From the NCBI RefSeq assembly GCF_006345805.1, contig NC_043026.1, forward strand, positions 9,300,001 through 9,364,000: 64,000 nucleotides of DNA, read 5' to 3'. This DNA comes from Octopus sinensis (Eukaryota). Positions 13,263-60,210 of the stretch are shown here, piece by piece. The notes under the pieces were generated by a model. It did not search any database, was not told where the DNA came from, and was given only the letters and a program-made list of their open reading frames with translations. Position numbers and translations under genes: made by a program. How positions within the stretch are numbered: the stretch's first letter is position 1; the number at the start of each line of letters is the position of its first letter.

Positions 13263-15191
13263 ATGGAAAAGAGTGAGAAAGTGAAGGAACAGATTTTTCC
13301 AGAAGATAGCAAAAAAGAGAGACAAAAATTGTCACATGACTGTGATGTGTGTAAAAAGTCTTTCTCTCAAAAAGGTAACTTAAATAAGCACAAACGTATT
13401 CATACAGGAGAGAAGCCATTTCACTGTGGAATCTGTGGTAAATCATTCTCTGACCGAAGTGCTTTAAATTCTCACATACGTGTTCATACTGGAGAGAAGC
13501 CATTTCACTGTAACATCTGTGGTAAATCATTCTCTGCAAGTGGTACATTGACTAAACACAAACTTCTTCATACAGGAGAGACACCATATTCCTGTAATAT
13601 CTGTGGTAAATCATTTTCTGGTAAAAGTGCTCTAACTTATCATAAACGTATTCATACAGGAGAGAAGCCATTTCAGTGTGATATTTGTGGTAAATCATTT
13701 GCTGTAAGCAGTTTCTTAACTACTCACAGACATATCCATGCAGATGAGAAGCCTTATCATTGTGGCATTTGTGGTAAATCATTCCTTTCAGCCATACACG
13801 TCACTAGACACGAGCGTATTCATACAGGAGAGAAGCCATTTCACTGTGTCATCTGTGGTAAATCATTCTCTCGAAAAGATGTCTTGACTTTACACAAACG
13901 TATTCATACAGGAGAGAAGCCATATCAGTGCAACATCTGTAACAAATCTTTCCCTGCCAGTAGGGACCTAACTACTCATAAACGTATTCATACAGGAGAG
14001 TCACCATATCATTGTGATATCTGTGGTAAATCATTCTCTCAAAGTTGCAACTTAACTACTCATAAACGTTCCCATACAGGAGAGAAGCCATATCAGTGCA
14101 ACATCTGTAACAAATCTTTCTCTGATAGAAGGAACCTAACTACTCATAAAGGTATTCATACAGGAGAGTCACCATATTCTTGTGATATCTGTGGTAAATC
14201 ATTCTCTCAAAGTTGCAACTTAACTACTCACAAACGTTCCCATACAGGAGAGAAGCCATACCACTGTGATATCTGTGGTAAATCATTCTCCGTGAGTTCT
14301 AACTTAACTGGACACAAACGTATTCATACAGGTGAAACACCATATTCTTGTGATATCTGTGGTAAATCATTCTCTCAAAGTGGCGACTTAGCTAAACATA
14401 AACGTTTCCATACAGGAGAGATGCCATATCCCTGTGATGTCTGTAACAAATCTTTCTCTACCAGTTGTAACCTAATGACCCATAAACGTATTCATACAGG
14501 AGAGAAGCCATATCAGTGCGACATCTGTAACAAATCTTTCTCTGATAGAAGGAACCTAACTACTCATAAACGTATTCATACAGGAGAGACACCATTTCAC
14601 TGTGAAATCTGTGGTAAATCATTCTCTAAAAGTGGCAACTTAACTACTCATGAACGTCTTCATACAGGAGAGAAGCCATACCACTGTGATATCTGTGGTA
14701 AATCATTCACCGTGAGTTGTAACTTAACTGGACACAGACGTATTCATACAGGAGAAACACCATATTCTTGTGATATTTGTGGTAAATTATTCTCTCAAAA
14801 AATTTATTTGACTTTACACAAACGTATTCATACAGGAGAGACACCATTTCACTGTGAAATCTGTGGTAAATCATTCTCTCAAAATGGCCACCTAACTACT
14901 CATAAACGTATTCATACAGGAGAGACACCATATCACTGTGATATCTGTGGTAAATCATTCTCTCAAAGTGGCCACCTAACTACTCATAAACGTATTCATA
15001 CAGGAGAGACACCATATCACTGTGATATCTGTGGTAAATCATTCTCTCACCAAAGTGCTTTCATTTCTCACAAACGTATCCATACAGGAGAGAAGCCATA
15101 TTCTTGTGATATCTGTGGTAGGTCATTCACTCAACATAGCAGCTTAACTTCTCACAAACATGTTCATCAGGGGAAGAAGCAATCCCACTAA
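13263..15191 (+). CDS. ZNF2 (A-type): 642 aa, 22 tandem C2H2 fingers, no recognisable effector domain
   Basis: Intact ORF; repeats of CxxC...HxxxH with TGEKP/TGETP linkers; length = 26 + 28x22. Confidence 0.95.
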
Positions 15192-15625
15192 TATTTGCGC
15201 TAAATCATAATCTCTAAGGGATTACCGGAACCCTTTACCATGCAGGTTATTCTGTCGAACGTGATGTTTATTTACTCACATTATTTTCAATTTGCCATCC
15301 ATTAGCTCACAGTTTTCAAGTTTTGATGATGTGGTTGTGTATTTTCAGAATGGCATCGTATGGTAGGTGCAAGAGGCTGAGTCTGGCTATGTGCTATGTT
15401 AAAGGGATGTATTGATAAAAGTTTAGTAAAATTCTATGAATTAGAAAAAAGATATTTAATTTTAATTCTCAAATTTTTATCAATTTTTGCGTGACATTAA
15501 AGGGACATTACTCATATATGAACTTAGGCGCACACACACACCCAGACACAACGGATAAAAGACAATACAAAGAGTTTTCAAATTGAGTAAACAGGAGTAG
15601 TTGTGTGGTAAGTAGCTTGCTTCCC

Positions 15626-16607
15626 TTTGTCGGAGACGGACGTGTTTGTTTTTGGCGGAGAGTTCTTGGTGCTTGATGTCACATCTTTCGTTGTGAAATA
15701 TTGAACTTTGAGGCTTGACTACAGGTAGGCGTTTGTCGTATTTTTTGAGGGCTTAGTGAAGTTTGTTGCCCTGTATTTAATAATTTTTGGTGAGTAATAG
15801 ACTCCAATCTGCTCCAGACATTTGCCTGCCTGTGGCCGCCTATAAAGACTCATTTTGCAGTGAGAATTGTGTTTTTGAGGAGGCGTAGCCCGTCCGCAAC
15901 AATTAATTTCTTTGCGAAAATTATCTTTGTGTCTGAGGACTACCAAGGCAGGAAGGACTGTTTTTGCAAGGTGGACATGAGTGTTTTGGCTCTGGCCAAT
16001 TACAAGAAAAAAGAACAAAAACAGAGAAGGTTGTCGAGGCAAGTGATTTTGTTTTATCTGAGCTGGGTGTAATTTGTTATATTGTTATTTTTTGTTAACA
16101 AATTTCGCCTGCTCTCGGCGGCTGCTGTTTTGTGAATTTAGTGTGAATATTTTGGATTCATTAAAAAAAAAAAAGCAGTGGAGGGACGTATCCTCGCCCA
16201 AATGATTAGAACCTGGTACAGTTACCATTGGCTGTAGCCAGTATTGTGTTTGGATTTCTTTTACCAATTACGGGTAAAGACGATTCATACCAAGGAACCT
16301 ATGTACATTTGGCCAGGAGTACCTTTTCGGCCGAAAATTAATTTATTTCTTTGCCTGGATTTGAACTCTCTTCTTCAAAGCTTTCGTTTATTTAAAAGAA
16401 TAAAAGAACTCTTTTTTGAACTGTTATTTTTTATTTTATTTCTTCCCTTCTTTTTTTGTGTCTTGTTTTATTTTCTTACATTTTGAACTGTAATTGAACT
16501 TTGTGTTGAAATGGCAAAGGAATTTCTTGTGTGGGACTTGACACCTCCCCAAAAATGGTGAAAAGAGCTTGAAAGGAAGACGGTGGTGTTGAGGACTTAC
16601 TCAAAGT
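15626..16607 (+). mobile_element. Tx1/L1-like LINE family B, 5' UTR and start of ORF1, 3'-deleted, inserted in an S3 SINE
   Basis: Preceded by the S3 head caggagtagttgtgtggtaagtagcttgcttccc (15592-15625) and followed by the S3 tail gtcaatgactgaaacaagtaaaagag; colinear with 29951-30890. Confidence 0.7.
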
Positions 16608-16879
16608 CAATGACTGAAACAAGTAAAAGAGTAAAGAGTATATAATTGCCATTAGTGTTCTGATAAATAAAACAGAAGCCTGTGTATGAAACTGGTCTTT
16701 TTCCTACTTCAGTTATTTCATTTTTCTCTTATAAAATACACACATACAGGAGGGGTAAACTATACATATAATAATACTTTGAATGTGGCTCTCAAGAAAG
16801 AATAAAAGCAATTACCCAATTAATGACAGGTATTACTACGAGTAGTTTATATACATATACACACACAAAGGAACCAACC

Positions 16880-17065
16880 GTAAAAGCACCATCCGATTGT
16901 AGCTGTTGCCAGCATCGTTTGGCCTCCGTGCCAGTGGCACGTGAAAGCAACCACTACACTAACGGAGTGGTTGGCATTAGGAAGGGCATCCAGCCGTAGA
17001 AACATTGTCAGAACAGACTGGGCCTGGTGCAGCCTCCTGGCTTCCCAGACCCCAGTTGAACCATC
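16880..17065 (+). mobile_element. RTE 3' UTR fragment
   Basis: gtaaaagcaccatccga...ggcattaggaagggcatccagc...cccagaccccagttgaacc; paralogous to 61768-62010. Other copies: 18215-18350, 21195-21420, 33450-33668, 49840-50055, 52838-53063, 63078-63210. Confidence 0.8.
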
Positions 17066-18617
17066 ACAAATTTTAATGAACTCTATCTGGAACAGTGGAA
17101 GTTGTATCACAGTTGAAATTCTGTAGCATTGGTTATGAGTTTTGCTGGAGAGTTAACTGTGGCTGGTCTAGTTTGTGTGCCTGGAGTTACCTTTATATAA
17201 AAGAATGACAAGAAGAACCAGGTAAATTCAATGCAACTATTATTTATTACAACCCCTTATAAAAATACATGGCAAATGTCTTACATATTGTGAAGTAACA
17301 GGTTTGGCAAGTTTTAACAAACTCTATCTGGAACAGTGGAAGTTGTATCATAGTTGAAATTCTGTAGCATGTTCATAGTTTGGTTCTGTGTGTTGGGCAG
17401 CATCTGTTGTTGTGATCTGTCCGTTGCTGTAGAGGAAGTACAAGTTTACCAGGCCAGAGAGAGAGAGAGAGATGAGGAATGAAGACAGAAACGGGTGTGC
17501 TGCCACAAAGGAGACACATGGTTACCCAGCCCGAGGGAAAAGCAGGAGAAGGAGATAGAGGGTGGGAGACAGCACGATGGAGATAGTGGCAAAATGATGG
17601 GCGTATTCACTAGGGAGGGGATTTGAACATAAATGGGGATCCTTGAGTAAGGGAAGAAAGAGATATAGATGGTGGCAAGGGCCAGGCCATAACCTTGGGG
17701 TTTCAACATCATAATATAAGGGACAGGATACTGAGTTCAATTTCCGCCGAGGTCGACTTTGCTTTTCATCCTTTTAGGGTCGATTAAATAAGTACCAGTT
17801 ACGCACTAGGGTTCATGTAATCGACTTAATCCGTTTGTCCCCTCTGTTTTTAGCCCCTTTTGGGTAGTAAAGGAATAGGATACTGCAAAGGAAGCATGAT
17901 TAGAGTGTAGGGGGTGTTGAGTGATGACAATCTGGGTATTATATAGGGTCAAGGGGCTACCGGATGGGAAGGATTGGGGGAGTGAGAGGTAGGCATGGTG
18001 TATGGAAGGAATGTGAAGAAGAGATGTAGATTGGTTTGTTCGTGGTAGGGTGTGTAAAAAGTTTTCTTGTTACATGTGGGTGGAAGACATAGGTTGAGGG
18101 CAAGCCAATAGCAATAATACAGTAAGACAGGGAATGGGGGTGGAACAGACAGGTCAGGACTAGCGGAGAGCAATGCTACAGTGAGACAGGGCAGGACTGT
18201 ATTTAAAATATCCGATCGTGGCCGTTTGCCAGCCTCGTCTGGCACCTGTGCAGGTGGCACGTAAAAAGCACCCACTACACTCACAGACTGGTTGGCATTA
18301 GGAAGGGCATCCAGCTGTAGAAACACTGCCAGATCAGACAACTTGGTGCATCTAGTGTCCACTCTTTAGAATTTAAACCAGCCATATCTGGCCCAAATAT
18401 TCTACCTATTTCATCATCAAAGTAGTCAGTCGGCTTCTTACACCTACCCTACAATGTCATTGTGAAAATACACAATCATATCATCAAAACTTGAAAGCTG
18501 TGGGTTAATGCATGACAAATTGAAAATTATGTGAATAAATAACCCTCACATTCGACAGAATAATCTGCATGGTAAAGGGTTCAGTCACCCCTTACAGATT
18601 ATGATTTAGCACAAATA

Positions 18618-20036
18618 TCAGTGGGATTGCTTCTTCCCCTGATGAACACGTTTGTGAGAAGTTAAGCTGCCATGTTGAGTGAATGACCTACCACAGATAT
18701 CACAAGAATATGGTGTCTCTCCTGTATGAATACGTTTGTGAGAAATGAAAGCACTTTGGTCAGAGAATGATTTACCACAGATATCACAGTGATATGGTGT
18801 CTCTCCAGTATGAATACGTTTATGAGTAGTTAGGCTGCCACTTTCAGAGAATGATTTACCACAGATATCACAAGAATATGGTCTCTCCCCTGTATGAATA
18901 CGTTTGTGTGTAGTCAAGTTACCTTTTTGAGAGAATGATTTACCACAAATGTCACAGTGAAATGGCTTCTCTCCTGTATGAACACGTTTGTGAGATTTTA
19001 AAAGGCTTTGGACAGAGAATGATGTACCACAGACATCACAGTGATAGGGCTTCTCTCCTGTATGAATACGCTTATGTGTAGTTAGATTCCTACTGAGAGA
19101 GAAAGATTTGCCACAGATGTCGCAGTGATACAGCTTCTCTCCTTTATGAATACGTTTGTGAGCAGTTAAGTGCCCACTTTGAGAGAATGATTTACCACAA
19201 ATGTCGCAGTGAAATGGCTTCTCTCCTGTATGAATACGTTTGTGAGAAGTTAAATACCCACTCTGAGAGAATGATGTACCACAGACATCACAGTGATAGG
19301 GCTTCTCTCCTGTATGAATACGCATATGTGTAGTTAGGTTCCTACTGAGAGAGAAAGACTTGCCACAGATGTCGCAGTGATACAGCTTCTCTCCTGTATG
19401 AATATATTTGTGAGCAGTTAAACACCCACTTTGAGAGAATGATTTACCACAGATGTCACAAGAATACGGTGTTTCTCCTGTATGAATACGTCTGTGTTTA
19501 GTCAGGGTACTACTGGCAGAGAAAGATTTGCCACAAATGTTGCACTGATATGGCTTCTCTCCTGTATGGAAACGTTTGTGAGCAGTTAAGTTCCCAATTT
19601 GAGTGAATGATTTACCACAGATATCACAAGAATATGGTGTCTCTCCTGTATGAATACGTTTATGAGTAGTTCGGTTCCTACTGGCAGAGAAAGATTTGCC
19701 ACAGATTTCACAGTGATATGGCTTCTCTCCTGTATGAATACGTTTGTGTGTAGTCAAGTTATTATTTTTAGAGAATGATTTACCACAGATGTCACAGTGA
19801 AATCGTTTCTCCTCTGTATGAATACGCTTGTGCATATTCAAGCGACCCTTTTCAGAGAATGATTTACCACAGATGTCACAATGAAATGGCTTCTCTACCG
19901 TATGAATACGTTTGTGCTTATTCAAGTTACCCTTTTCAGAGAAGGACTTTTTACACACATCACAGTCATGTGACAATTTTTGTTTCCCTTTTTTTTCTGG
20001 AAAAGTCAGATCCTTTAGTTTCTCACTCTTTTCCAT
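18618..20036 (-). CDS. ZNF3 (B-type): 472 aa, 16 C2H2 fingers
   Basis: Intact ORF, length 24 + 28x16; acceptor at 20402-20403, exon-1 donor at 23348-23353. Confidence 0.95.
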
Positions 20037-20609
20037 TATTCTTCTTTGAAAATCACAATATATATAAATATATATGTTTTCTTCTTTGTACTTCTATAGT
20101 CTTTTGTTTGCAAGTATTTCGACTGCTGTATTTCTGTCCAGTGTTACCTTTGTCCCAAAACTCGTTAGTAAATTTATCCAAGTTTAATTTGCTAAGAGAC
20201 ACATCTTGTAGACACTCCAGCCAGTGATGTCCAGAAGGTTTCCTAATAACACATTTCAGAGTAAATATATCAGAGGAATTCTGCCATAGATTTATAGAAA
20301 CAATCTTATATATCTGTTCTGTACAATATTTCCATTTTGGTCTTTAAAAGATGATAAATAATGAGAATGTATCTTCAGTTATGCCAATGTCATCTGATAT
20401 TCTGAAAGAATAAAGAAACAACAGTGTAAGATATAGAGGCTACTTAAAAAAACACAGATTCAACATTTCCATAAAGATAAACTCTAGAAATAAACATTTA
20501 CCTGAACAACAGAACTTTCTAATTTATTAATATTTACATCACAAAATCTTTTGTAAAACTAACATATTTCTAAATTCCAGTTACACATTCCTACTGCACA
20601 ACATTTATA

Positions 20610-20643
<34 letters not shown>

Positions 20644-21155
20644 AAGTTAATCCAAACAAGAAAACAAAAAGACAACAATGCAAGGATGTGGAACAAAGAA
20701 AGTATTATTGGGCGCTCAGGAAAAAAAGGGAAGAATGACGTTTCGAGCGGAGCTCTACGTCGGAAACATAGGAGAAGGAAAGATCCCGAGGTGGGAGGAC
20801 AGAGGGAAAAAAAATGCAAGTGGTCTTCACGAGGTCACATACTGAAAAGGTGGAAGTGGTAAACAAGAGGGAGCAGGTTTTCAAAGACAGGAGAGCGGAA
20901 TCAAAGAAGGAATGGTAAACAACGGTGTGCGAGATGACAAGGGTGTGTGTGTGAGTGAAGGCGTGTGTGTGTATTGTGTGTATATGGTGGGCGAAGGCTA
21001 GTGGCAAGCAGCAGTAGCGAGTCACAGATCAGAAACAGGAAGGAATGTGTGTGTGCGTGTATATGTCTCGTCTGTGTGTTTTGTTGTAGTATGTGTGTGT
21101 GTACGTGTGCATTTTTTTGTGTGTATGGCGAGTAACTGTGTGATATATATACGCT

Positions 21156-21193
<38 letters not shown>

Positions 21194-21899
21194 ACGTAAA
21201 AAGCACCATCCGATCGTGACCATTTGCCAGCCCCGTCTGGCACGTAAAAAGCACCCACTACACTCATGGAGTGGTTGGCGTTAGGAAGGGCATCCAGCCG
21301 TAGAAACTTTGCCAGATCAGACTGGGCCTGGTGCAGCCTTCTGGCTTCCCAGACCCCAGTTGAACCGTCCAACCCATGCTAGCATGGAAAACGGATGCTA
21401 AACGATGATGATGATGATGATATTGTGAAATTGATGAATAGGGGACTTATAGACCTCTTGTTTAAATGCCTACAAAAAGTACATCAGCTAAGCAAATGGC
21501 CTTCCCTAAATGCATTGAAACCATTATAACAGAATCACTGTTTCAGGAAATTATCGTCGTTCAAAGACAACAAAATAATAATAATAATTCGTTCGTTTAT
21601 TGGCCACAAGGGCTAACAAAAATCAATTAAAACATAAAGGGACAAAACACAGGACGAAAGTTACAAAGGGTTTTGTCCGTAACTATGTAGAAAACGAAAA
21701 TGAAAAAAAAAAAAACTGTGCTAACGACCCGGGGGGTGGGGGACTTTCAGAAAATTTACAAGATCCGATTTTTCCGTCATAAGTTAGTGTAAAATGGATT
21801 GCGAGGATGATCCGGTTCTTGACTGAAGAAGGCTTCCAATGACCCGTCCGTGCTTTTTGTATCGTCTATTTGGATGTTTTGCGTTCTTGTCCCATTTTG

Positions 21900-21945
<46 letters not shown>

Positions 21946-21947
<2 letters not shown>

Positions 21948-22760
21948 GGTGAATTGAAGAAATGGAGCTGAACGAAGATTGAACAGAAATCGTTTTATTT
22001 CATTCTACACGTGTTTCGAAAGGCACAATTTACCAAAATCCGATTGAATAAGGAGACCATATTGTGTCTTTCTCTTCAGGAAGAAATAGGAAATCCGTTG
22101 GAAAAAACAAAAACAGAACAGAGGCGGATCAAAACAAATCGAACTAGGCTCCTAAGAGCCCATGGCAAAACTGTTTATCAGTGTATGTTGAGAACCGGTG
22201 GTTGAAGATTTTAACGGGTCAGGCAGCGGTCATTCCTGTGGGTGAGGGTGTGTAGATGTTCTTTGTGACCGAGAATAAAGTTCTGACTATTTAAGGAATA
22301 TTGGATGTTTTATAAGGGGCGAGAAAAATCTACTTAGAGACAAGTGTGTGTTTACTGTTCTATATATGTGTGCTGGCGCAGGTTGGCAAGACCTCCGTCA
22401 AGCGGTAGAAAACATTTTATGTGTACGTGTGTGCGTTTGATCGCTCGGCTGTCAGTGGTTAAGCCGCTCTACACAATGGCTACTGCAGTAAGAACCGTTG
22501 GGTGGCAGAAAAAAATATATTATGTTTTATGTGTGCGTGTGTTCGTCTGATAAAGCCCTGTTTATCTTACAGGAGTAATTCCCCTTGCAGTGGTTAATCG
22601 TAATTATCTTAAAGGCTATTTCAGAATTTGTTACCAAGGGCTATGGGTGCAGGTATTATTTACCTCCAACCGTGCTGTCTTCTGCTGTGATTTTTGCTAC
22701 CAAGGTATCGGTCAAACTTTTGATTAATCTGCTACAAGATTATTCATCTTTCTATTTCAC
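21946..22760 (-). mobile_element. Penelope-like non-coding or degenerate insertion within a (TA)n microsatellite of the ZNF3 intron
   Basis: (TA)n on both sides (21905-21944, 22761-22790). The orthologous site in the ZNF9 intron (53546-53614) is an uninterrupted (TA)n. Carries a hammerhead motif. Confidence 0.7.
21996..22088 (-). ncRNA. Type-I hammerhead ribozyme, canonical core, all three stems paired
   Basis: UAUUUCUUC-CUGAAGA-GAAAG.A.CACAAU...AUUGUG.C.CUUUC-GAAA-CACGUG-UA-GAA(U)GAAAUA; predicted cleavage after GUA, between 22006 and 22005. Confidence 0.85.
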
Positions 22761-23028
22761 ATATATATATATATATATATATACATATATATTTCTTTTG
22801 TTTTTTACGGAATCCCACTTTTTGGTTATGGAGGATCCGATTCTGAGAAAACTTTTTTGAAAAATCGCATTTTCAAAATTTCATTTACCACCAGCCTCTT
22901 CACTTTTCACTTGAAAAAAAACAAACAAACATATTTTTGCCCTTAAAAACGGTGGGAGAAACATTTTCGGTAACAAAAAAATAAAATATTGTAAATATTT
23001 TCAAAGGAAAAAGTGTGATTTAAGGGAG

Positions 23029-23289
23029 ATTTGGCTGTTGTTTCTAGCAGATCCTAAGACAACCCTCCTCGTTTCACTTTCCCATCTTTTGAAGTTTTTC
23101 TCTTCATAAACACATTTATGATTTTTTTACAACCCTATTCTTCGCCCCTGGTTGCTTCTGTTTACGATTTAAAATATCGGTGAGTCTGAGGCCGTTTCTG
23201 GCATTTATCCACAGTAAAAACACAAGAAACGTGGGAAAATGATGGAAAGTGTAGAAGGTAGCCTCCATAGCTAGAAATAGCAGCCAAAT
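23029..23289. repeat. MITE-like segment with 20-bp imperfect inverted ends in B-type intron 1 (also ~42458-42719, ~53854-54115)
   Basis: atttggctgttgtttctagc (23029-23048) versus gctagaaatagcagccaaat (23270-23289). Confidence 0.4.
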
Positions 23290-23347
23290 GTCGCACAAAT
23301 CAAAGGACATCTGAGACAGGAAGTATTTAGAAATTAAATAGTTTAAT

Positions 23348-23520
23348 ACTTACGGAAATGTCTTTATAAAGGATGGTGTTGTTGTTAGAAGTGCGTCAGG
23401 TGGTTGAGAAATGTATTATAAATGTGTTTGGGAGTGAATTGAGAGAAATTCCGACTGAAATCAAGTTTGTTAAAATGAAGGAATTTAGGCGGAAATACGC
23501 TTAGTGCGCATGCGTATGAA
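23348..23520 (-). promoter_or_regulatory. Putative ZNF3 promoter and non-coding exon 1 (B-type)
   Basis: tgcgcatgcgta at 23505-23516; acttac|ggaaatg (donor, reverse complement) at 23348-23353; ~100-nt block nearly identical to 10510-10620. Confidence 0.65.
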
Positions 23521-23682
23521 ATACTGGTTTTTCTTCTTTTTTTCTTTTGTTTTTTAAAGATTTTGGTAGAAAACCAGAAATTTCGGGGAGGGTCAAGTGT
23601 CAGTCGATTTCATGGACCCGAGTAGTCAACTGGTATTTATTTTATTGAACCCTAGCAGAAAAATGTGAAAGGCAAAGTTTAT

Positions 23683-24120
23683 GGATCTTTTCTGTTTGAA
23701 CGGCAGTTTTTAACATAATTTCTAGGTAACTAAAAAGTTTTAAACTTCGTATACTGGTAGAATGTGTTACATAAAACATCTTTTCCTCTTGGCTTTATTG
23801 AGAAAATTCTGTAGTTTGTAAGATATTTCGTCTTTAATTTCAAGCATTTCGGCAATTTCAACCAATCACTCACGTCTATTGAGGTAAAAAAACATTCTGT
23901 GCCGTATGAATATGTCCCTCGTTTAAGAAACAGATTGGGGATCTTTTGTTTGAACGGCAGTTTTTAACATAATTTCTAGGTAACTAAAAAGTTTTAAACT
24001 TCGTATACTGGTAGAATGTGTTACATAAAACATCTTTTCCTCTTGGCTTTATTGAGAAAATTCTGTAGTTTGTAACATGTTTGTAAGATATTTGTAAGAT
24101 ATTTTCTTCAACGGCCGTTT
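23683..24120 (+). repeat. Interspersed repeat (same family as 1040-1260), internally duplicated, between divergent B and A promoters
   Basis: ggatcttttctgtttgaacggcag...ttttaaacttcgtatactggtagaatgtgttac occurs at 23683 and 23938. Confidence 0.7.
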
Positions 24121-27130: not shown

Positions 27131-28135
27131 ATGGAAAAGAGTGAGAAAGTGAAGGAACAGATTTTACCAGAAGATAGCAAAAAAGAGAGACAAAAATTGT
27201 CACATGATTGTGATGTGTGTAAAAAGTCTTTCTCAAGAAAAGATAACTTAAATAGGCACAAACGTATTCATACAGGAGAGAAGCCATTTCACTGTGAAAT
27301 CTGTGGTAAATCATTTTCTGAAAGAAGTGCTTTAACTCCTCACAAACGTATTCATACAGGAGAGAAGCCATTTCCCTGTGATATTTGTGGTAAATCATTT
27401 TCTGGTAAAAGTGCTCTAACTTATCATAAACGTATTCATACAGGTGAGACGCCATTTCAGTGTGATAATTGTGGTAAATCATTCTCTCAACGAAGTGCTT
27501 TAACTCATCACAAACGTATTCATACAGGAGAAACACCATATTCCTGTAATATCTGTGGTAAATCATTTTCTGGTAAAAGTGCTCTAACTTATCATAAACT
27601 TATTCATACAGGAGAGAAGCCATTTCACTGTGATATTTGTGGTAAATCATTTGCTGTAAGGAGTTTCTTAACTAGTCACAGACATATCCATGCAGAAGAG
27701 AAGCCTTATCATTGTGGCATTTGTGGTAAATCATTCTCTCAAAGTGGCAACTTAACTGCTCATAAACGTCTCCATACAGGAGAGAAGCCATATCCCTGTG
27801 ATGTCTGTAACAAATCTTTCTCTGACAGTAGTAACCTAATTAGCCATAAACGTATTCATACAAGAGAAACACCATATTCTTGTGAAATCTGTGGTAAATC
27901 ATTCTCTCAAAGTGGCAACTTAGCTTCTCACAAACGTATTCATACAGGAGAGACACCATATCACTGTGATATCTGTGATAAATCATTCTCTCGCCAAAGT
28001 GCTTTCATTTCTCACAAACGTATTCATACAGGAGAGAAGCTATATCCTTGTGATATCTGTGGAAGGTCATTCACTCAACGTAGCAGCTTAACTTCTCACA
28101 AACGTGTTCATCAGGGGAAGAAGCAATCCCACTAA
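27131..28135 (+). CDS. ZNF4 (A-type): 334 aa, 11 C2H2 fingers
   Basis: Intact ORF, 26 + 28x11. Confidence 0.95.
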
Positions 28136-28343
28136 TATTTGCGCTAAATCATAATCTCTAAGGGGTTACTGAAACCCTTTACCATGCAGGTTATTCTGCA
28201 GATTGAACGTGGATAAATTTAGTTGTTTTGTGACAAAGGTAACAGTGGCCAGAAATACAACAGTTGAAATATTTGTAAACAAAAGACTACAGAAGCAAAA
28301 AGAATAATAAAAGAAGGTATATTGTGAAGTTGAAGGAAAAATA

Positions 28344-29516
28344 ATGGAAAAGAGTCAGAAAGTGAAGGAACAGATTTTACCAGAAGTTAGCAAAAAAGAG
28401 AGACAAAAATTGTCACATGACTGTGATGTGTGTAAAAAGTCTTTCTCACAAAAAGGTAACTTAAATAGGCACAACCGTATTCATACAGGAGAGAAGCCAT
28501 TTCACTGTGAAATCTGTGGTAAATCATTCTCTCAAAGAAGTGCTTTAACTCCTCACAAACGTATTCATACAGGAGAGAAACCATATTCCTGTAATATCTG
28601 TGGTAAATTATTTTCTGGTAAAAGTGCTCTAACTTATCATAAACGTATTCATACAGGAGAGAACCCATTTCAGTGTGATATTTGTGGTAAATCATTTGCT
28701 GTAAGCAGTTTCTTAACTCGTCACAGACATATCCATGCAGAAGAGAAGCCTTATCATTGTGGCATTTGTGGTAAATCATTCCTTTCAGCCATACACGTCA
28801 CTAGACACAAGCGTATTCATACGGGAGAGAAGCCATTTCACTGTGACATCTGTGGTAAAACATTCTCTCGAAAAGATCACTTGACTTTACACAAACATAT
28901 TCATACAGGAGAGAAACCATATCAGTGCAACATCTGTAACAAATCTTTCTCTGATAGAAGGAACCTAACTACTCATAAACGTATTCATACAGGAGAGACA
29001 CCATTTCACTGTGAAATCTGTGGTAAATCATTCTCTCAAAGTTGCAACTTAGCTACTCACAAACGTCTTCATACTGGAGAGAAGCCATATCACTGTGATA
29101 TCTGTGGTAAATCATTCACCGTGAGTTCTAACTTAACTGGACACAGACGTATTCATACAGGAGAAACACCATATTCTTGTGATATCTGTGGTAAATTATT
29201 CTCTCAAAAAATTTATTTGACTTTACACAAACGTATTCATACAGGAGAGACACCATTTCACTGTGAAATCTGTGGTAAATCATTCTCTCAAAGTTGCAAC
29301 TTAACTACTCACAAACGTCTTCATACAGGAGAGAAGCCATATCACTGTGATATCTGTGGTAAATCATTCTCTCACCAAAGTGCTTTCATTTCTCACAAAC
29401 GTATCCATACAGGAGAGAAGCTATATCCTTGTGATATCTGTGGAAGGTCATTTACTCAACATAGCAGCTTAACTTCTCACAAATGTGTTCATCAGGGGAA
29501 GAAGCAATCCCACTAA
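28344..29516 (+). CDS. ZNF5 (A-type): 390 aa, 13 fingers; tandem copy starting 62 nt after the ZNF4 stop, without its own promoter
   Basis: Intact ORF, 26 + 28x13. Junction at ~28197 gttattctg|cagattgaacgtgg fuses the A 3' flank to the A 5' UTR. Confidence 0.9.
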
Positions 29517-29950
29517 TATTTGCGCTAAATCATAATCTCTAAGGGATTACCGGAACCCTTTACCATGCAGGTTATTCTGTCTAATGTGATGTTTATTTAC
29601 TCACATTATTTTCAATTTGTCATGCATTAACTCACAGCTTTCAAGTTTTGATGATGTGGTTGTGTATTTTCAGAATGGCATCGTATGGTAGGTGCAAGAG
29701 GCTGAGTCTGGCTATGTGCTATGTTAAAGGGATGTATTGATAAAGGTTTAGTAAAATTTTATCAATTAGAAAAAAGATATTTAATTTTAATTCTCAAATT
29801 TTTATCAATTTTTGCGTGACATTAAAGGGACATTACTCATATATGAACTTAGGCGCACACACACACACAGACACAGGAGACAAAAGACAATACAAAGAGT
29901 TTTCAAATTGAGTAAACAGGAGTAGTTGTGTGGTAAGTAGCTTGCTTCCC

Positions 29951-31320
29951 TTTGTCGGAGACGGACGTGTTTGTTTTTGGCGGAGAGTTCTTGCTGCTTG
30001 ATGTCACGTCTTTCGTCGTGAAATATTGAACTTTGAGGCTCGACTACAGGTAGGCGTTTGTCGTATTTTTTGAGGGTTTAGTGGAGTTTGTTGCCCTGTA
30101 TTTAATATTTTTTGGTGAGTAATAGACTCCACTCTGCTCCAGACATTTGCCTGCCTGTGGCCGCCTATAAAGACTCACTTTGCAGTGAGAATTGTGTTTT
30201 CGAGGAGGCGTAGCCCCTCCGCAAAAATTATCTTCGTGTCTGTGGATTACCAAGGCAGGAAGGACTGTTTTTGCAAGGTGGAGGTGAGTGTTTTGGCTCT
30301 GGCCAATTACAAGAAAAAAGAACAAAAACAGAGAAGGTTGTCGAGACCAGTGATTTTGTTTTATCTGAGCTGGGTGTAATTTGTTATATTGTTATTTTTT
30401 GTTAACAAATTTCGCCTGCTCTCGGTGGCTGCTGTTTTGTGAATTTAGTGGGAATATTTTGGATTCATAAAAAAAAAAAAAAACAGTGGAGGGACGTATC
30501 CTCGCCCAAATGATTAGAACCTGTTGCAGTTACCGTTGGCTGTAGCCAGTATTGTGTTTGGATTTCTTTTACCAATTACGGGTAAAGACGATTCATACCA
30601 AGGAACCTATGTACATTTGGCCAGGAGTACCTTTTCGGCCGAAAATTAATTTATTTCTTTGCCTTTCGTTTATTTAAAAGAATAAAAGAACTCTTTTTTG
30701 AACTGTTATTTTTTATTTTATTTCTTCCCTTCTTTTTTTGTGTCTTGTTTTATTTTCTTACATTTTGAACTGTAATTGAACTTTGTGTTGAAATGGCAAA
30801 GGAATTTCTTGTGTGGGACTTGACACCTCCCCAAAAATGGTGAAAAGAGCTTGAAAGGAAGACGGTGGTGTTGAGGACTTATTCAAAGTCGCTCAACACC
30901 ATAGCCGTCTTCCCGAGGGCCACAATTTTGAATGAGCTGGCAGATTACATGCCAGCCATTAAATTTATTTCACGGGGTGTCAAATATGCAACGGTCTGGT
31001 TGCTGTTTGACTACCCCCAAGAAGCTTGCGATTTTGCAAGTCAGCTCCTCGAGGGCGAGGAAATAATGTTTCTTCCAAGCTACTGTGGAAAGAAATTGTT
31101 GAAAGCTTGGATCTGCGGTTTGCCAGCCGGAGTTGAGCCCGAGTGGATAGAGGACTCTATCCGCCGGGGTCTGGGTGGTAGCAGTACCATGCTGCTTAAT
31201 GTGAAAGTGTTGCCTGCAGCTGATTGGGAGGGGTCAAAAGCTGTTTTGACCCTATGGACCCAATCAGCCGAAAGTCTGGTCTTTCCAGATTTTTTGAGGA
31301 TGGCCGGGTCTAAATGGTGT
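29951..31320 (+). mobile_element. Tx1/L1-like LINE family B: 5' UTR + ORF1 N-terminal part (one in-frame stop), 3'-truncated
   Basis: ORF1 from ATG 30793: MAKEFLVWDLTPPQKW*KELERKTVVLRTY..LADYMPAIKFISRGVKYATVWLLF..EIMFLPSYCG aligns with ORF1 of the LINE at 34696-37757 (ETEKRAVVYKTF..LAPIWTDIVYISRGQAYSSVEVQF..EVVLLPTYMG). S3 head at 29917-29950. Confidence 0.75.
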
Positions 31321-32715
31321 TTCTTCACTTGCCACCTGCACAGGAGTCAGTCCAGCGGTCCTGGCAACTGCCGGGTGCCAGTCATAAGATTGGTTCAATT
31401 TCGATTTCTTTGTTATATTTAAAATAATTGAAAGAAACACAGAGCATCTCAAAATAAATACTGTAACGAAAGGGTTAATCTTGCATCATCTTTGTTTGTA
31501 TTTCTCTCATCTTTTATCAAATTCAATGATATGATTGCGGCCGACCTGGAGCAATGCCACAAAGAAATTTTAGTCAAATGAATCGACCCCAGTACTTATT
31601 CTTTTGCTAAGCCTGGTGCTTATTCTATCAGTCTCTTTTGCTGAACAGCTAAGTTACAGGGACGTAAACGCACCAGCATCAGTCGTCAAGCAATACTGGG
31701 AGATCAACATCGAAGACATACATATAATGAGTGTTGGTTATATCCAGCCTCATCCAGTTGCTCTTAATCTTGCATTGTCTAAAAATGGCCATTGTCTCAT
31801 GTGTGTCTGTGTTGGTGTTTCTTTCATCTTTTACTTGTTTCAGTCATTTGATTGCATCCATAGTGGGGGGCACCGCCCAGAAGAAATTTCAGTTGAATGA
31901 ATCGACCGCAATACTTATTTTTCTTTTTTAATTAAATCTAGTGCTTATTCTAATGGCCCCTTTTGCTGAACAGCCAAGATATGAAGATGTAAACACACCA
32001 ACACCAGTTGTCATGAAATACTGGGAGACAGACACAGACACATATACATACACACTTATATATACAGAGTGTTGGTTATGAGTTTTGCTTGCGAGTTAAC
32101 CGTGGCTGGTTCATCTTGATGTAGCTGTGTGTTGGTTATGCATTCACTGGTCTAGTCTGTCTGCCTGGAGTTACCGAATACAAAAGAATGACAAGAAGAA
32201 CCAGGTAAATTCAATGCAACTGTTATTTATTACAACCCCTTATAAAAATACATGGCAAATGTCTTACATATTGTGAAGTAACAGGTTTGGCAAGTTTTAA
32301 CGAACTCTATCTGGAACAGTGGGAGTTGTATCACAGTTGAAATTCTGTAGCATCTTCCTGGTTTGTTTCTGTGTGTTGGGCAGCATCTTTTGTTGTGATC
32401 TGTCCGTTGCTGTAGAGGAAGTACAAGTTTACCAGGCCAGAGAGAGAGAGAGATCAGGAATGAAGACAGAAACGGGTGTGCCGCCACAAAGGAGACACAT
32501 GGTTACCCAGCCTGAGGGAAATGCAGGAGGAGATAGAGGGTGGGAGACAACACGATGGAGATAGTGGCAAAATGATGGGCGTATTCAATAGGGAGGGGGA
32601 TCAGAATGTAAATGGGGATAGTTGAGTAAAGGAAGAGGGAGATATAGATGGTGGCAAGGGTTAGGCCATACTCTTGAGGTTCAAACGTCATAATATAAGG
32701 GACAGGATACTGCAA

Positions 32716-33090
32716 AGGCGACGAGCTGGCAGAAACATTAGACGCTACGTTCTGAGTTCAAATTCTGCCGAGGTCGACTTTGCCTTACATCATTTCGGGG
32801 TCGTTTAAATAAGTACCAGTTACACACTGGGGTCGATGTAATTGACTTAATCCGTTTGTTTGTCCGCTCTGTGTTTAGCCCCTTGTGGGTAGTAAAGAAA
32901 TAGGTATTTCGTCTGCCGCGACGTTCTGAGTTCAAATTCCGCCGAGGTTGACTTTGCCTTTCATCCTTTCGGGGTCGATAAATTAAGTACAAGTTACGCA
33001 CTGGGGTCAATGTAATCGACTTAATCCCTTTGTCTGTCCTTGTTTGTCCTCTCTGTGTTTAGCCCCTTGTGGGTAGTAAAGGAATAGGGT
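32716..33090 (+). mobile_element. S1 SINE dimer (paralogs 49107-49472, 17735-17875, 62678-62782)
   Basis: ggcgacgagctggcagaa head followed by two body units. Confidence 0.8.
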
Positions 33091-34005: not shown

Positions 34006-34695
<690 letters not shown>

Positions 34696-37970: not shown

Positions 37971-38022
<52 letters not shown>

Positions 38023-42175: not shown

Positions 42176-42222
<47 letters not shown>

Positions 42223-44972: not shown

Positions 44973-45977
44973 ATGGAAAAGAGTGAGAAAGTGAAGGAAC
45001 ATATTTTTCCAGAAGATAGCAAAAAGGAGAGACAAAAATTGTCACATGACTGTGATGTGTGTAAAAAGTCTTTCTCAAAAAAAGGTACCTTAAATAGTCA
45101 CAAACGTATTCATACAGGAGAGATGCCATTTCACTGTGAAATCTGTGGTAAATCATTCTCTCAAAAAATTACCTTGACTACCCACAAACGTATTCATACA
45201 GGAGAGAAGCCATATCATTGTAGTGTCTGTGGTACAAGTTTCTCTTACCAAAGTGTTTTAAATAATCACCAGTATTGTCATACAGGAGAGAAGCCATTTC
45301 ACTGTGAAGTCTGTGGTAAATCATTCTCTCAAAGAAGTGCTTTAACTAATCACAAACGTATTCATACAGGAGAGACACCATATTCCTGTAATATCTGTGG
45401 TAAATTATTTTCTGGTAAAAGTGCTCTAACTTATCATAAACGTATTCATACAGGAGAGTCACCATATCATTGTGATATCTGTGGTAAATCATTCTCTCAA
45501 AGTTGCAGCTTAACTACTCACAAACGTTCCCATACAGGAGAGAAGCCATACCACTGTGATATCTGTGGTAAATCATTCTCCGTGAGTTGTAACTTAACTG
45601 GACACAGACGTATTCATACAGGAGAAACACCATATTCTTGTGATATCTGTGGTAAATTATTCTCTCAAAAACTTTATTTGACTTTACACAAACGTATTCA
45701 TACAGGAGAGACACCATTTCACTGTGAAATCTGTGGTAAATCATTCTCTCAAAGTGGCCACCTAACTATTCATAAACGTATTCATACAGGAGAAACACCA
45801 TATTCTTGTGAAATCTGTGGTAAATCATTCTCTCAAAGTGGCAACTTAGCTTCTCACAAACGTATCCATACAGGAGAGAAGCTATATCCTTGTGATATCT
45901 GTGGAAGGTCATTTACTCAACGTGGCAACTTAACTTCTCACAAACGTGTTCATAAGGGGAAGAAGCAATCTCACTAA
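44973..45977 (+). CDS. ZNF8 (A-type): 334 aa, 11 fingers; upstream exon 1 and promoter missing
   Basis: Intact ORF; acceptor at 44616/44617; A-intron homology begins only at ~43250. Confidence 0.93.
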
Positions 45978-50393: not shown

Positions 50394-52232
50394 TCAGTGG
50401 GATTGCTTCTTCCCCTGATGAACACGTTTGTGAGAAGTTAAGTTGCCACGTTGAGTGAATGACCTTCCACAGATATCACAAGAATATGGCTTCTCTCCTG
50501 TATGAATGCGTTTATGTGCAGTCAAGCTACCTTTCTGAAAGAATGATTTACCACAAATGTCACAGTGAAATGGCTTCTCTCCTGTATGAATACGTTTGTG
50601 AGATTTTAAAACACTTTGGAAAGAGAATGATTTACCACAGATATCACAAGAATATGGTCTCTCCCCTGTATGAATACGTTTATGTGCAGTCAAGCTACCT
50701 TTTTGAAAGAATGATTTACCACAAATGTCGCAGCGAAATGGCTTCTCTCTTGTATGAACACGTTTGTGAGATTTTAAAACACTTTGGACATTGAATGATT
50801 TACCACAGACATTACAGTGATATGGCTTCTCTCCCCTATGGAAACGTTTGTGAGAAACTAAGTTGCCACTTTGAGAGAATGATTTACCACAAATGTCACA
50901 AGAATATGGTGTTTCTCCTGTATGAATACGTCTGTGTTTAGTTAAGCTACTACCGGCTGAGAAATATTTGCCACAGATGTTGCACTTATATGGCTTCTCT
51001 CCTGTATGGAAACGTTTGTGAACAGTTAAGTTCCCACTGTGAGAGAATGATTTACCACAGACATGACAGTGATAGGGCTTCTCTCCTGTATGAATACGTT
51101 TGTGAGCAGTTAAATACCCACTTTGAGAGAATGATTTACCACAGATTTCACAGTGAAATGGTGTCTCTCCTGTATGAACACGTTTATGAATAGTTAACTT
51201 ACTACTAGTAGAGAAAGATTTGCCACAAATATCACAGTGAAATGGCTTCTCTCCTGTATGAATACGTTTGTGAGCAGCGAAGTTCCCACTTTGAGTGAAT
51301 GACTTACCACAGATATCACAAGAATATGGTGTCTCTCCTGTATGGATACGTTTATGAATAGTTAGCTTCCAATTGGCAGAGAAAGATTTGCCACAAATAC
51401 CACAGTGAAATGGCTTCTCTCCTGTATGAATACGTTTATGAGGAGTTAAAGCACTGTTGCGAGAGAATGATTTACCACCGATGTCACAGGAACATGCGAT
51501 CTCACCTGTATGAATCCGTTTGTGAGAAGTTAAAGCACTCCTTTGAGAGAATGAATAACCACAGATATTACAGGAGTACGGTTTCTCTCCTGTATGAAGA
51601 CGTATGTGAGATTTTAAAATGCTTTGGTGAGAGAATGATGTACCACAGACATCACAGTGATAAGGCTTCTCTCCTGTATGAAGACATTTGTGTCTTATCA
51701 AGTCATTTTTCTGAGAGAATGGTTTACCACAAATGTTACACTGATGTGGCTTCTGCCCTGTATGGACACGTTTGTGATAATTTAAAGCACTTCTATAAGA
51801 GAATGGTGTACCACAGATAACACAGTGATAAGGCTTTTCTCCAGTATGAATACGTTTGTGTGTAGTTAAGCTATTCCTGTGATGGAATGATTTACCACAA
51901 ATGTCACAGTGAAATGGCTTCTCTCCTGTATGAATATATTTGTGTGAATTTAAATCACTTCGGTCAGAGAATGATTTACCACAGACATTACATTGATAAG
52001 GCTTCTCTCCAGTATGAATACGTTTGTGTGTAGTCAAGTTATTATTTTGAGAGAATGATTTACCACAGATGTCACAGTGAAATGGTTTCTCCCCTGTATG
52101 AATACGCTTGTGTATATACAAGTGAGCCTTTTGAGAGAAGGACTTTTTACACACATCACAGTCATGTGACAACTTTTGTTTTCCCTTTTCTTCTGGAAAA
52201 GTCAGATCCTTTAGTTTCTCACTCTTTTCCAT
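50394..52232 (-). CDS. ZNF9 (B-type): 612 aa, 21 finger units (finger 9 broken, CDIGG)
   Basis: Intact ORF, 24 + 28x21; acceptor at 52599-52600, donor at 54173-54178. Confidence 0.95.
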
Positions 52233-53551: not shown

Positions 53552-53617
<66 letters not shown>

Positions 53618-54172: not shown

Positions 54173-54345
54173 ACTTACGGAAATGGTTTAAAAAAGGATG
54201 GTGTTGTTGTTAGAAGTGCGCCAGGTGGTTGAGAAATGTATTATAAATGTGTTTGGGAGTGAATTGAGAGAAATTCCGACTTAAATCAAGTTTTTTCAAA
54301 TGAATGAATGGAGGCGGAAATACGCTTAGTGCGCATGCGTATGAA
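54173..54345 (-). promoter_or_regulatory. Putative ZNF9 promoter and non-coding exon 1 (B-type)
   Basis: acttac at 54173-54178; tgcgcatgcgta at 54330-54341. Confidence 0.65.
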
Positions 54346-57695: not shown

Positions 57696-59205
57696 CTTCT
57701 TTTTTCTTTTGGTTTCTGTATTTTGGGTTCTTTTAGTATTCTGACACCATGTTGTTGTTGTTATATATATATATATATATATAATGTATTGAGTATTAAA
57801 GGAAGTAGTGAGTACTTAGTATGAAAGATTAAGAAAGTGAGAGAGACTGAAAAAACGTGTTAACGATACGAGATACTTTATTCGACTGCGCGTTGTTGTA
57901 GAAGGTATTTCTTGTTCATGTTTGTTTTGTGAGGAAAAAAAGATACCCTTCCCCTAAACCTAACCCTAAAACAGATTGAAATGCAATAGATCGATTCTAG
58001 GGTCATAATTATGGGTGACAATTTCATATGACACCGCTAGAAAAAAACTGCCGTTGAAGAAAATATCTTACAAATATGTTAGAAACTACAGAATTTTCTC
58101 AAGAAAGCCAAGAGAAAACGATGTTTTATAAACAAGTTTAAAAGTGTCTAGTTACTTGGAAATTATTTCAAAATCTGTTGTTCAAACCGAAAAGATCCAA
58201 ATTGTTTAGTTTCTTTTAAAAAAATTATTTATTTTGTGTTTTATTTCCTTTGCTAGGTAGTCGTTGTAGGATCGACTAGTCACGACTAGCTAGCGCGGAT
58301 GTGCGAGTGCGCGCACCGGGACCACTCTTAAGTAGTACCCTGTGTTGGATTCAAAGTCAATTATCCCCCCATGCAATGTTTAATTTGGTAATTTTCAGTT
58401 ATCAAAGTGATGTCTCACATGGGGCAAAATGAGTAATGACTATTTCCAATAATTTTTTCTCTTTATGGAGTTAAAGAGAAGAAATTGTGAGCTGTTAGGT
58501 TACTAGTCACAGACATACATTTTCTACAATATCCTCTGGCCTTGTGAATGGATTTGGGAGATGGAAACTGAAGGAAGCCCAATATATATATGTGTGTGTG
58601 GGTGGGTGTGTTGTCCTCCCACCCCTTCAACACTTGACAAACAGTGTTGGTGTGTTTATGTCCCCATAAACCTGTGGTTTGGCAAAAGTGGCTGATAGAA
58701 TAAGTGCTAAGCTGATGTAAATATTAATAAATTAGAAAGTTCTGTTGTTCAGTTAAATGTTTATTTCTAGAGTTAATCTTTATGGAAATGTTGAATCTGT
58801 ATTTTTTTAAGTAGCCTCTATATCTTACACTGTTGTTTCTTTATTATTTCAGAATATCAGATGACATTGGCATAACTGAAGATACATTCTCATTATTTAT
58901 CAGCTTTTTAAAGACCAAATTGGAAATATACAGAAGAGATATATAAGATTGTTTCTATAAATCTGTGGTGGAATTCCTCTGATATATTTACTCTGAATTG
59001 TGTTATTAGCAAACCTTCTGGACATCACTGGCTGGAGTGTCTACAAGATGAGCCTGTTTGCAGATTGAATGTGGATAAATTTAGTTGTTTTGTGACAAAG
59101 ATAACAGTGGCCAGAAATACAACAGTTGAAATATTTGTAAACAAAAGACTATAGAAGCAAAAAGAATAAAAAAAGAAGGTATATTGTGAAGTTGAAGGAA
59201 AAATA

Positions 59206-60210
59206 ATGGAAAAGAGTGAGAAAGTGAAGGAACAGATTTTACCAGAAGGTAGCAAAAAAACGAGACAAAAATTGTCACATGACTGTGACGTGTGTAAAAA
59301 GTCTTTCTCAAGTAAATGTAACTTAAATAGTCACAAACGTATTCATACAGGAGAGAAGCCATTTCACTGTGAAATCTGTGGTAAATCATTCTCTCAAAAA
59401 ATTTCCTTGACTACCCACAAACGTATTCATACAGGAGAGAAGCCATATTCCTGTAATATCTGTGGTAAATTATTTTCTGATAAAAGTGCTCTAACTCAAC
59501 ATAAACGTATTCATACAGGAGAGGAGCCATATCATTGTAGTGTCTGTGGTAAATCATTTTCTGATAAAAGTGTTTTAAATAATCACCAGCATTGTCATAC
59601 AGGAGAGAAGCCATTTCAATGTGACATCTGTGGTAAATCATTCTCTCAAAGAAGTGCTTTAACTAATCACGAACGTATTCATACAGGAAAGAAGCCATAT
59701 TCCTGTAAAATCTGTGGTAAATTATATCCTGGTAAAAGTGCTCTAACTTATCATAAACGTATTCATACAGGAGAGTCACCATATCCTTGTGATATCTGTG
59801 GTAAATCATTCACCGTGAGTTCTAACTTAACTGGACACAGACGTATTCATACAGGAGAAACACCATATTCTTGTGATATCTGTGGTAAATTATTCTCTCA
59901 AAATATTTATTTGACTTTACACAAACGTATTCATACAGGAGAGACACTATTTCACTGTGAAATCTGTGGTAAATCATTCTCTCAATGTGGCAACTTAGCT
60001 AAACATAAACGTATTCATACAGGAGAGACACCATATTCTTGTGATGTCTGTAATAAATCTTTCTCTACCAGTAGTAACCTAATGACCCATAAACGTATTC
60101 ATACAGGAGAGACACCATATTCTTGTGATATCTGTGGAAGGTCATTTACTCAACATAGCAGCTTAACTTCTCACAAATGTGTTCATAAGGGGAAGAAGCA
60201 ATCCCACTAA
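59206..60210 (+). CDS. ZNF10 (A-type): 334 aa, 11 fingers; canonical exon 1 absent
   Basis: Intact ORF; acceptor at 58852/58853; A-intron homology starts at ~58350. Confidence 0.93.
   Translation: MEKSEKVKEQILPEGSKKTRQKLSHDCDVCKKSFSSKCNLNSHKRIHTGEKPFHCEICGKSFSQKISLTTHKRIHTGEKPYSCNICGKLFSDKSALTQHKRIHTGEEPYHCSVCGKSFSDKSVLNNHQHCHTGEKPFQCDICGKSFSQRSALTNHERIHTGKKPYSCKICGKLYPGKSALTYHKRIHTGESPYPCDICGKSFTVSSNLTGHRRIHTGETPYSCDICGKLFSQNIYLTLHKRIHTGETLFHCEICGKSFSQCGNLAKHKRIHTGETPYSCDVCNKSFSTSSNLMTHKRIHTGETPYSCDICGRSFTQHSSLTSHKCVHKGKKQSH

Follow-up and report, generated by a model that had tools for sequence, protein, structure and literature searches.

Whole-finger gain and loss, exchange between paralogs and diversifying DNA-contact residues in a tandem poly-zinc-finger gene cluster of Octopus sinensis

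Known zinc-finger systems and the octopus cluster

Gain and loss of fingers is the common path of divergence among KZNF genes (PMC3126818), and the finger array of PRDM9 is a coding minisatellite of 84-bp repeats in which first-position repeats are distinct and changes fall at positions -1, 3 and 6 (PMC3890296). The FiNZ-ZNF genes of cyprinid fish form a large, adaptively evolving family with a charged 28-aa N-terminal sequence that resembles no known domain and with a link to the control of transposable elements (TEs); analyses of zinc finger (ZNF) and TE co-evolution in the same study included octopus (PMC10547256). Large lineage-specific C2H2 expansions with expression in the nervous system have been described in octopus and squid (PMC12513265). 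That study matches our locus in octopod taxon and gene class, but has no finger-level anatomy such as the 84-bp register, collinearity, block duplications or reticulation, and mentions neither 'exon' nor 'recombination'. Our analysis provides such a view for a cluster of C2H2 zinc-finger genes in a 64,000-nucleotide stretch of Octopus sinensis (assembly GCF_006345805.1, contig NC_043026.1, positions 9,300,001 to 9,364,000, forward strand), which is called the window below and to whose first letter all positions refer.

A six-frame scan of the window identifies ten C2H2 zinc-finger loci, Z1 to Z10 (Table 1), with 142 C2H2 motifs in all. The initial annotation had placed the cluster at 13263-60210; the cluster is real, but it comprises ten loci, of which Z1 lies outside that range and Z6 is a pseudogene. 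Eight of the ten loci have intact open reading frames (ORFs) and, when the proteins are cut into 28-aa units, share one layout of a leader, n fingers of 28 aa and the tail 'SH'. The arithmetic proposed earlier is exact in all eight: the A-type ORFs of 642, 334, 390, 530, 334 and 334 aa follow 26+28n (n = 22, 11, 13, 18, 11 and 11), and the B-type ORFs of 472 and 612 aa follow 24+28n (n = 16 and 21). The K/E-rich leader directly precedes finger 1. It is 24 aa long in all six A-type genes, whereas a 6-bp deletion leaves both B-type genes with 22 aa, and the tail is short and basic. Each gene has 11-22 fingers, and the cutting also bears out that leader, first finger, last finger and tail are near constant. 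The pattern C-x2-C-x12-H-x3-H is kept in 122 of the 123 fingers, finger 9 of Z9 being the exception, and the linkers are of the TGEKP type (TGEKP 53, TGETP 32, TGESP 6). An 84-bp period is found by TRF at all ten loci, together with higher-order periods of 168-420 bp. Every intact copy has its own ATG, its own stop and conserved 5' and 3' flanks, and copies lie on both strands. Z1 is broken by a 1-bp frameshift near 4795-4811 and has lost its 3' end to a 184-bp repeat that interrupts the array at 5483; it is likely a pseudogene.

The octopus cluster resembles the mammalian KRAB-ZNF clusters, for example on human chromosome 19, in tandem and segmental duplication, whole-finger gain and loss, selection on contact residues and interspersed pseudogenes, and also in that each finger array is one uninterrupted ORF. 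Unlike KRAB-ZNF genes, however, the octopus genes carry only the 22-24-aa leader and no KRAB, SCAN or BTB domain, have a far more compact layout, and form convergent A/B pairs in a repeated 14-kb unit. A Pfam search with the Z2 protein matched C2H2-type models only (zf-C2H2, E=6e-120 with 21 stretches; zf-H2C2_2, E=6e-186), with no match to KRAB (PF01352), SCAN, BTB or SET. With PRDM9 the genes share the 84-bp unit, in-register change of copy number, a constant and distinct first repeat and changes concentrated at -1, 3 and 6; they differ from it in having no PR/SET, KRAB or SSXRD domain and in being ten paralogous genes rather than alleles of one. Identity among fingers of one array averages only ~74%, and the array is thus far less minisatellite-like than that of PRDM9. 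The absence of KRAB and SET domains means that the cluster belongs to neither the KRAB-ZNF nor the PRDM9 class. The short charged N-terminal tag followed by fingers recalls FiNZ-ZNF proteins, but this likeness is architectural only, and FiNZ is specific to fish. The window is best filed as a lineage-specific tandem cluster of Krueppel-type poly-zinc-finger genes that form an octopod-specific, leader-defined subfamily, and the products would presumably be sequence-specific DNA-binding regulators. Their DNA binding, expression and biological target we infer; by analogy with KRAB-ZNF and FiNZ-ZNF proteins, an arms race with transposable elements is the leading candidate for the last. We consider it probable that the cluster arose by the ordinary evolution of tandemly duplicated poly-ZNF genes, in which fingers are gained and lost in register, their order is kept and their contact residues are selected, with no dedicated shuffling system.

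Finger order and the growth of arrays

The initial annotation had described the locus as a cassette-like combinatorial system, in which array middles were assembled from a common set of recognition helices reused in different order and number. Our results show that fingers are not shuffled and that their order is conserved. When all 123 fingers are clustered by 84-nt identity into types, the type strings of the A genes (Table 1) are collinear; blocks that are present in one may be absent or tandemly duplicated in another. In a crossing test on reciprocal-best pairs of internal fingers with at least 90% identity, 24 of 196 pairs-of-pairs cross (12%), versus 98 +/- 9.7 (50%) in 2000 order shuffles, the minimum of which is 60. 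The longest collinear chain holds 127 of the 142 reciprocal-best finger pairs, and in 12 or 13 of the 15 off-chain pairs one of the fingers has a nearly identical copy elsewhere in its array. In the comparison of Z5 with Z2, all 13 Z5 fingers are collinear, with a mean nucleotide identity of 95.4%. The claim of a different order is thus wrong.

The claim of a common helix set is overstated. Every helix listed earlier is present in the genes named for it, but there are 94 distinct 7-residue helices among the 123 fingers and only 16 of them recur. Across the full 84 nt, including synonymous sites, fingers with a recurrent helix share 93-100% identity, which indicates that these helices are common by descent and were not reused. 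The nearest relative lies in another gene for 98 of the 123 fingers (median identity 95%) and in the same gene for 17, the latter being recent in-array duplicates; the best copy within an array has a median identity of 86%.

Whole-finger differences between arrays with constant ends, sequence exchange between paralogous units and the recurrence of some helices across several genes are what one would also expect if a dedicated shuffling or cassette system built the array middles combinatorially from a shared helix alphabet, possibly in somatic cells too. The conserved order, the number of distinct helices and the common descent of the recurrent ones argue against such a system, and conserved signal sequences at finger borders are not seen beyond the finger consensus. 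Its architecture is also missing, as there are no donor cassettes and no single acceptor locus but full genes on both strands, each with a start, a stop and flanks of its own. This differs from the cassettes of the VLR, chicken Ig and antigenic-variation type, in which an incomplete or acceptor locus is served by silent promoter-less donors, and also from the variable exons of clustered protocadherins, since the octopus ORFs each end in their own stop and the strands alternate. We regard a dedicated shuffling system as extremely unlikely.

Ordinary gain and loss of fingers leaves clearer traces. Differences between arrays always amount to whole 84-bp units, and change consists of duplication or deletion of blocks of 1-4 fingers. 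The most evident case is Z7, where fingers 2-6 versus 6-10 reveal duplication of a 336-bp unit of four fingers; the two copies show 1 difference over their last 200 bp, finger 6 is identical to finger 10, and the duplication is recent. Further in-array duplications are K-K-K in Z7, F-G/F-G and J-J in Z2, J..J in Z5 (98%) and U-B/U-B in Z4 and, in the B genes, fingers 8/11 of Z3 (96%) and 17-18/19-20 of Z9. Loss has probably left a footprint in finger 10 of Z8 (45801-45884), a hybrid whose 5' part (nt 1-65) matches the O-type finger Z4.9 and whose 3' part (nt 51-84) matches the L-type finger Z5.12, in both cases with 0 mismatches. The O and L fingers still stand side by side in Z4, and the hybrid is probably the product of an in-register deletion of 84 bp. 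Because such exchanges are in register and internal, the terminal fingers and the unique flanks survive, and constant ends with a variable middle need no special mechanism; any tandem array subject to unequal exchange in register would come to look like this, PRDM9 being an example (PMC3890296). A free two-donor chimera scan of all fingers returned many marginal 'improvements', as multiple testing on a shared framework predicts, and was not used.

Exchange between units and selection on contact residues

It had also been proposed that the 84-bp repeats allow in-frame recombination between paralogs. This part of the proposal stands in so far as change does involve whole 84-bp units and exchange between paralogous units is revealed by quartets and structural markers, but it does not reorder fingers. 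We compared Z2, Z5, Z8 and Z10 over the last finger and the 3' flank (1323 ungapped sites). The 2:2 sites split 10/8/3 over the three possible quartet topologies, where ~0.44 would be expected from parallel hits on a star tree. Since all three topologies are backed, no single tree explains the data. Each of three structural markers, all with identical breakpoints, in turn supports a different topology: a 116-bp deletion in Z8 and Z10, an 18-bp indel with linked single-nucleotide polymorphisms (SNPs) in Z5 and Z10, and the form of the spacer beyond +1417, shared by Z2 and Z10 versus Z5 and Z8. The signal is weaker in the 5' flank, with 8 different splits among 5 taxa from 13 informative sites, and inside the arrays F1 and B place Z2 with Z5 while H and J place it with Z8, with 4 sites each. 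That the units have recombined or undergone conversion with each other, and that their history is reticulate, is well supported by these sequence comparisons.

The same data bear on a simpler history of pure birth and death, in which one long ancestral array underwent only deletions and in-array duplications, with no exchange between paralogs. A single ancestral order of ~25 fingers does suffice to yield all A-type strings if blocks are lost and gained, collinearity is high, and the conflicting SNP splits are not significantly clustered in space. However, at least 11 of the 1323 sites conflict with any single tree where <1 is expected, the three structural markers point to three quartet topologies, and both the splits in the 5' flank and the discordant groupings by finger type inside the arrays add to the conflict. 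We therefore consider birth and death without exchange to be unlikely.

Two side observations concern the convergent neighbours. A helix patch in the last finger of Z8 (45927-45933; QRGNLTS, with three nucleotide states within 7 bp) matches the convergent neighbour Z9 and also Z6, not the other A genes, and one site (15119 in Z2) is shared by Z2 and its neighbour Z3 alone, the last fingers of the two being 98% identical. These 3-4 sites, some of which are CpG, could mean that convergent neighbours undergo gene conversion at their inverted 3' ends, but this reading is unproven.

The initial annotation had suggested comparing dN/dS at the helix positions with that of the framework, and the contact sites prove to be diversifying. 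Taking helix positions -1, +2, +3 and +6 as contact positions and counting minimum changes within finger types, we found N63:S6 at contact codons versus N94:S54 in the framework (Fisher P=8.5e-6). The per-site ratios are 2.7 for contact and 0.45 for framework codons, with omega>1 at contact sites (P=0.008) and omega<1 in the framework (P=5e-6). Nei-Gojobori estimates from collinear finger pairs agree with this: pN is 0.154 at contact sites, and the framework has a pN of 0.036 and a pS of 0.083, giving a pN/pS of 0.43 that is significantly <1. These results demonstrate that the contact residues are under diversifying selection and that the genes are selectively maintained with a purified framework; the contrast between the two classes of site means that the genes are kept by selection while their DNA-contact residues are driven to change. 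The same pattern is the classical signature of KZNF genes and PRDM9 (PMC3126818, PMC3890296, PMC10547256).

This result bears directly on whether the cluster might consist of non-functional, coding-derived satellites, in other words of pseudogenes in neutral drift. Two of the ten loci, Z1 and Z6, are broken, and Z2, Z4 and Z8 have no exact public-protein record, as such a view would have it. Nevertheless, eight ORFs of 334-642 codons remain intact despite 3-6% flank divergence, length varies only in multiples of 84 bp, the zinc ligands are kept in all fingers but one, and the framework ratio speaks of constraint. Neutral decay is accordingly very unlikely, even a little more so than an error of assembly. 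The latter, in which the units would be mis-assembled haplotypes or collapsed or expanded repeats, draws on the fact that the region is highly repetitive, with units 91-97.5% identical, and hard to assemble. The units, however, differ by 3-9%, with many indels and differing TE and satellite content, finger numbers are very different, and there are no N gaps in the window. Differences on this scale would be more than is expected between haplotypes, and we hold an assembly artefact to be very unlikely as well.

Ordinary cluster evolution with in-register exchange would then proceed as follows. In the germline, units of ~14 kb with a convergent A and B gene would duplicate, joined by a local tandem duplication that made the Z4/Z5 pair and by the inverted copy Z7. 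In-register unequal exchange or slippage within the 84-bp arrays would add or remove blocks of 1-4 fingers while preserving order and the two terminal fingers, paralogous units recombine or undergo gene conversion, and diversifying selection acts on helix -1, +2, +3 and +6 over a purified framework. Of this, the sequence directly shows how the genes are built, that their fingers are collinear, that blocks have duplicated, that the units are reticulate and that selection has the pattern given above.

Several points weigh against this interpretation. A few exceptions to finger order (Z2.14~Z10.10, Z3.12~Z9.7) require an extra step of duplication and loss. The footprint in the hybrid finger of Z8 rests on 4 diagnostic sites only, and a strict scan of fingers with ordered donors from the same gene found no other clean case at the set threshold. 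The mosaic signal within arrays is small, 4 sites versus 4 sites, and the spatial clustering of SNP splits does not reach significance (P=0.06, or 0.21 once neighbouring sites are collapsed). Framework pS (0.083) exceeds flank divergence (0.03-0.06), suggesting that some 'orthologous' finger pairs may be paralogous or that flanks were homogenised. Finally, exact-protein look-ups of Z2, Z4 and Z8 in public collections returned no record, and a homology search with leader plus finger 1 gave no candidate.

In a homology search with full-length Z8, generic vertebrate ZNFs at 40-60% identity prevailed and the sole octopus match, P0042 (56%), had no leader; in an exhaustive representative search, leader plus finger 1 drew mostly giant multi-finger proteins in which finger 1 matched many times over, and the result carried no information on the leader. 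Under-annotation may explain the absence of these ZNF proteins from public sets. The protein sets hold 228 C2H2 sequences for O. vulgaris versus 1,453 for O. bimaculoides (PMC12513265).

Unit structure, neighbouring sequence and significance

Self-comparison of the window reveals a tandem array of ~14-kb units, each with an A gene on the plus strand and a convergent B gene on the minus strand (Table 1).

Table 1. Positions of zinc-finger loci, repeated units and junctions in the window
Feature	Position	Strand	Description
Z1	4231..5483	+	Divergent family member, ~80% identical to the others; own 24-aa leader; at least 14 fingers
Z2	13263..15191	+	A-type, 642 aa, 22 fingers, A..BCDEFGFGH.IFJHKJJLM
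Z3	18618..20036	-	B-type, 472 aa, 16 fingers, convergent with Z2
Z4	27131..28135	+	A-type, 334 aa, 11 fingers, AUBUBCGIOLM
Z5	28344..29516	+	A-type, 390 aa, 13 fingers, AUBCDEFJHKJLM
Z6	about 34012..34700	-	B-type pseudogene fragment, 6 recognisable fingers, 2-bp frameshift, without 5' half
Z7	38597..40189	-	A-type, 530 aa, 18 fingers, AGNVBGNVBGHKKKJHLM; inverted copy
Z8	44973..45977	+	A-type, 334 aa, 11 fingers, ANVUBGHKJOM
Z9	50394..52232	-	B-type, 612 aa, 21 fingers, convergent with Z8; finger 9 without second Cys
Z10	59206..60210	+	A-type, 334 aa, 11 fingers, ANBVUBHKJIM
Unit I	10148..23950		Z2 and Z3
Unit II	24178-34691		Z4, Z5 and truncated Z6; paralogous to unit I
Unit IV	42178-54773		Z8 and Z9; paralogous to unit I
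Unit V	58390-63347		Z10 and B-gene 3'-flank remnant only; paralogous to unit I
A-B spacer, unit II	29742..34011		96.6% identical over 4.3 kb to the unit IV spacer, 46087-50399
Z4-Z5 junction	28136..28343	+	63 bp of conserved 3' flank joined to the last 147 bp of 5' flank; TCTG/CAG microhomology

The flanks of units I, II, IV and V are 91-97.5% identical, those of the A genes 94-97.5% over at least 1.4 kb, and the 3' flanks of Z6 and Z9 97%. The spacer form beyond +1417 in units I and V differs from that of II and IV. Z7 has only ~680 bp of 5' and 434 bp of 3' flank in common with the other copies. What A, B and Z1 have in common is an ancient gene unit whose flanks extend only ~550 bp on the 5' side (85-89%) and ~190 bp on the 3' side. 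Its 5' border abuts microsatellites, where A units have (GT)n and B units (TA)n(CA)n (12690-12716, 20594-20640, 52790-52840); terminal inverted repeats were not found at its borders, and the idea of a transposon-borne gene was rejected.

Z4 and Z5, separated by a gap of 209 bp, are a local tandem duplication. The 5' flank of Z5 consists of 147 bp only, without the upstream ~400 bp that is conserved in all other copies; if the promoter resides there, Z5 would need transcription from Z4, either through read-through or by serving as an alternative terminal exon. Motifs resembling splice sites occur 5' of the ATG (TTTGCAG|ATTG at -147 and AAG|GTAAC near -105), which we record as an observation only, and the acceptor-like TTTGCAG|ATTG lies exactly at the -147 border of the Z4-Z5 junction. 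The first ~63 nt 3' of the stop are nearly invariant in the A and B genes (nine genes), the remaining 3' flank being 86-89% identical, and the Z4-Z5 duplication keeps exactly those 63 nt. They include a predicted 8-bp hairpin ~23 nt after the stop, TAAGGGGT...7 nt...AACCCTTTA (15214-15237 and the equivalent site in each of nine genes), for which the nine-gene alignment offers no covariation.

In unit V a B-gene 3'-flank remnant at 62834-63347 matches the sequence downstream of Z3 at 97% identity; the homology ends 136 bp before the expected stop codon, and there is no B gene up to the window end. As judged from this remnant, the B gene of unit V appears to have been lost or displaced. Around the inverted Z7, the flanking segments 34692-38163 and 40870-42177 are accompanied by a break of unit II-unit IV homology inside the Z6 array at 34691, by a 231-bp tandem duplication at 37796-38183 and by a 240-aa ORF at 40887-41609 (+) that has no Pfam match and adjoins the 5' breakpoint of Z7. 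These features suggest that a rearrangement or TE-associated insertion brought in Z7 and truncated Z6.

Among the remaining content of the window, a 584-codon ORF at 55256-57010 (-; GTG start as listed) with aspartyl-protease, Integrase_H2C2 and rve domains is a pol fragment of a long terminal repeat (LTR) retroelement. Its best match, with 90% identity across 45% of the query, is a 'retr-1'-like protein of Octopus vulgaris, and other O. vulgaris matches reach 78-86%. This places the window in an octopod, in line with the coleoid context of the initial annotation. Satellites have periods of 123 bp (1831-3282), 184 bp (5483-6012) and 65 bp (9205-10044). The 184-bp unit is also dispersed in A-B spacers and elsewhere, e.g. 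at 32743-33088, 49133-49478, 17731-17879 and 11059-11331, and is therefore probably an interspersed repeat that was locally amplified. An Rfam search gave no match in the window.

How far such arrays still change is a separate matter. They could remain unstable, with ongoing in-register exchange between paralogs giving different arrays to each individual or, in a somatic or programmed version, to each cell lineage such as neurons. There is no pointer to a programmed or somatic mechanism in this single sequence, and we judge this the least likely of all the possibilities weighed here. A milder version, with germline allelic hypervariability as in PRDM9 spread over ~10 genes and a new octopus-specific N-terminal effector motif, is much more likely, though still less probable than not.

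In summary, this cluster is a well-behaved example and reveals no new mechanism. It does provide a finger-level view of how cephalopod C2H2 expansions grow, in which the rules known from vertebrate KRAB-ZNF genes and PRDM9 act in a mollusc family without KRAB. If the leader is an effector motif, these genes would represent a third independent ZNF subfamily, after KRAB and FiNZ, built for rapid retargeting, plausibly against the abundant transposons of the octopus.

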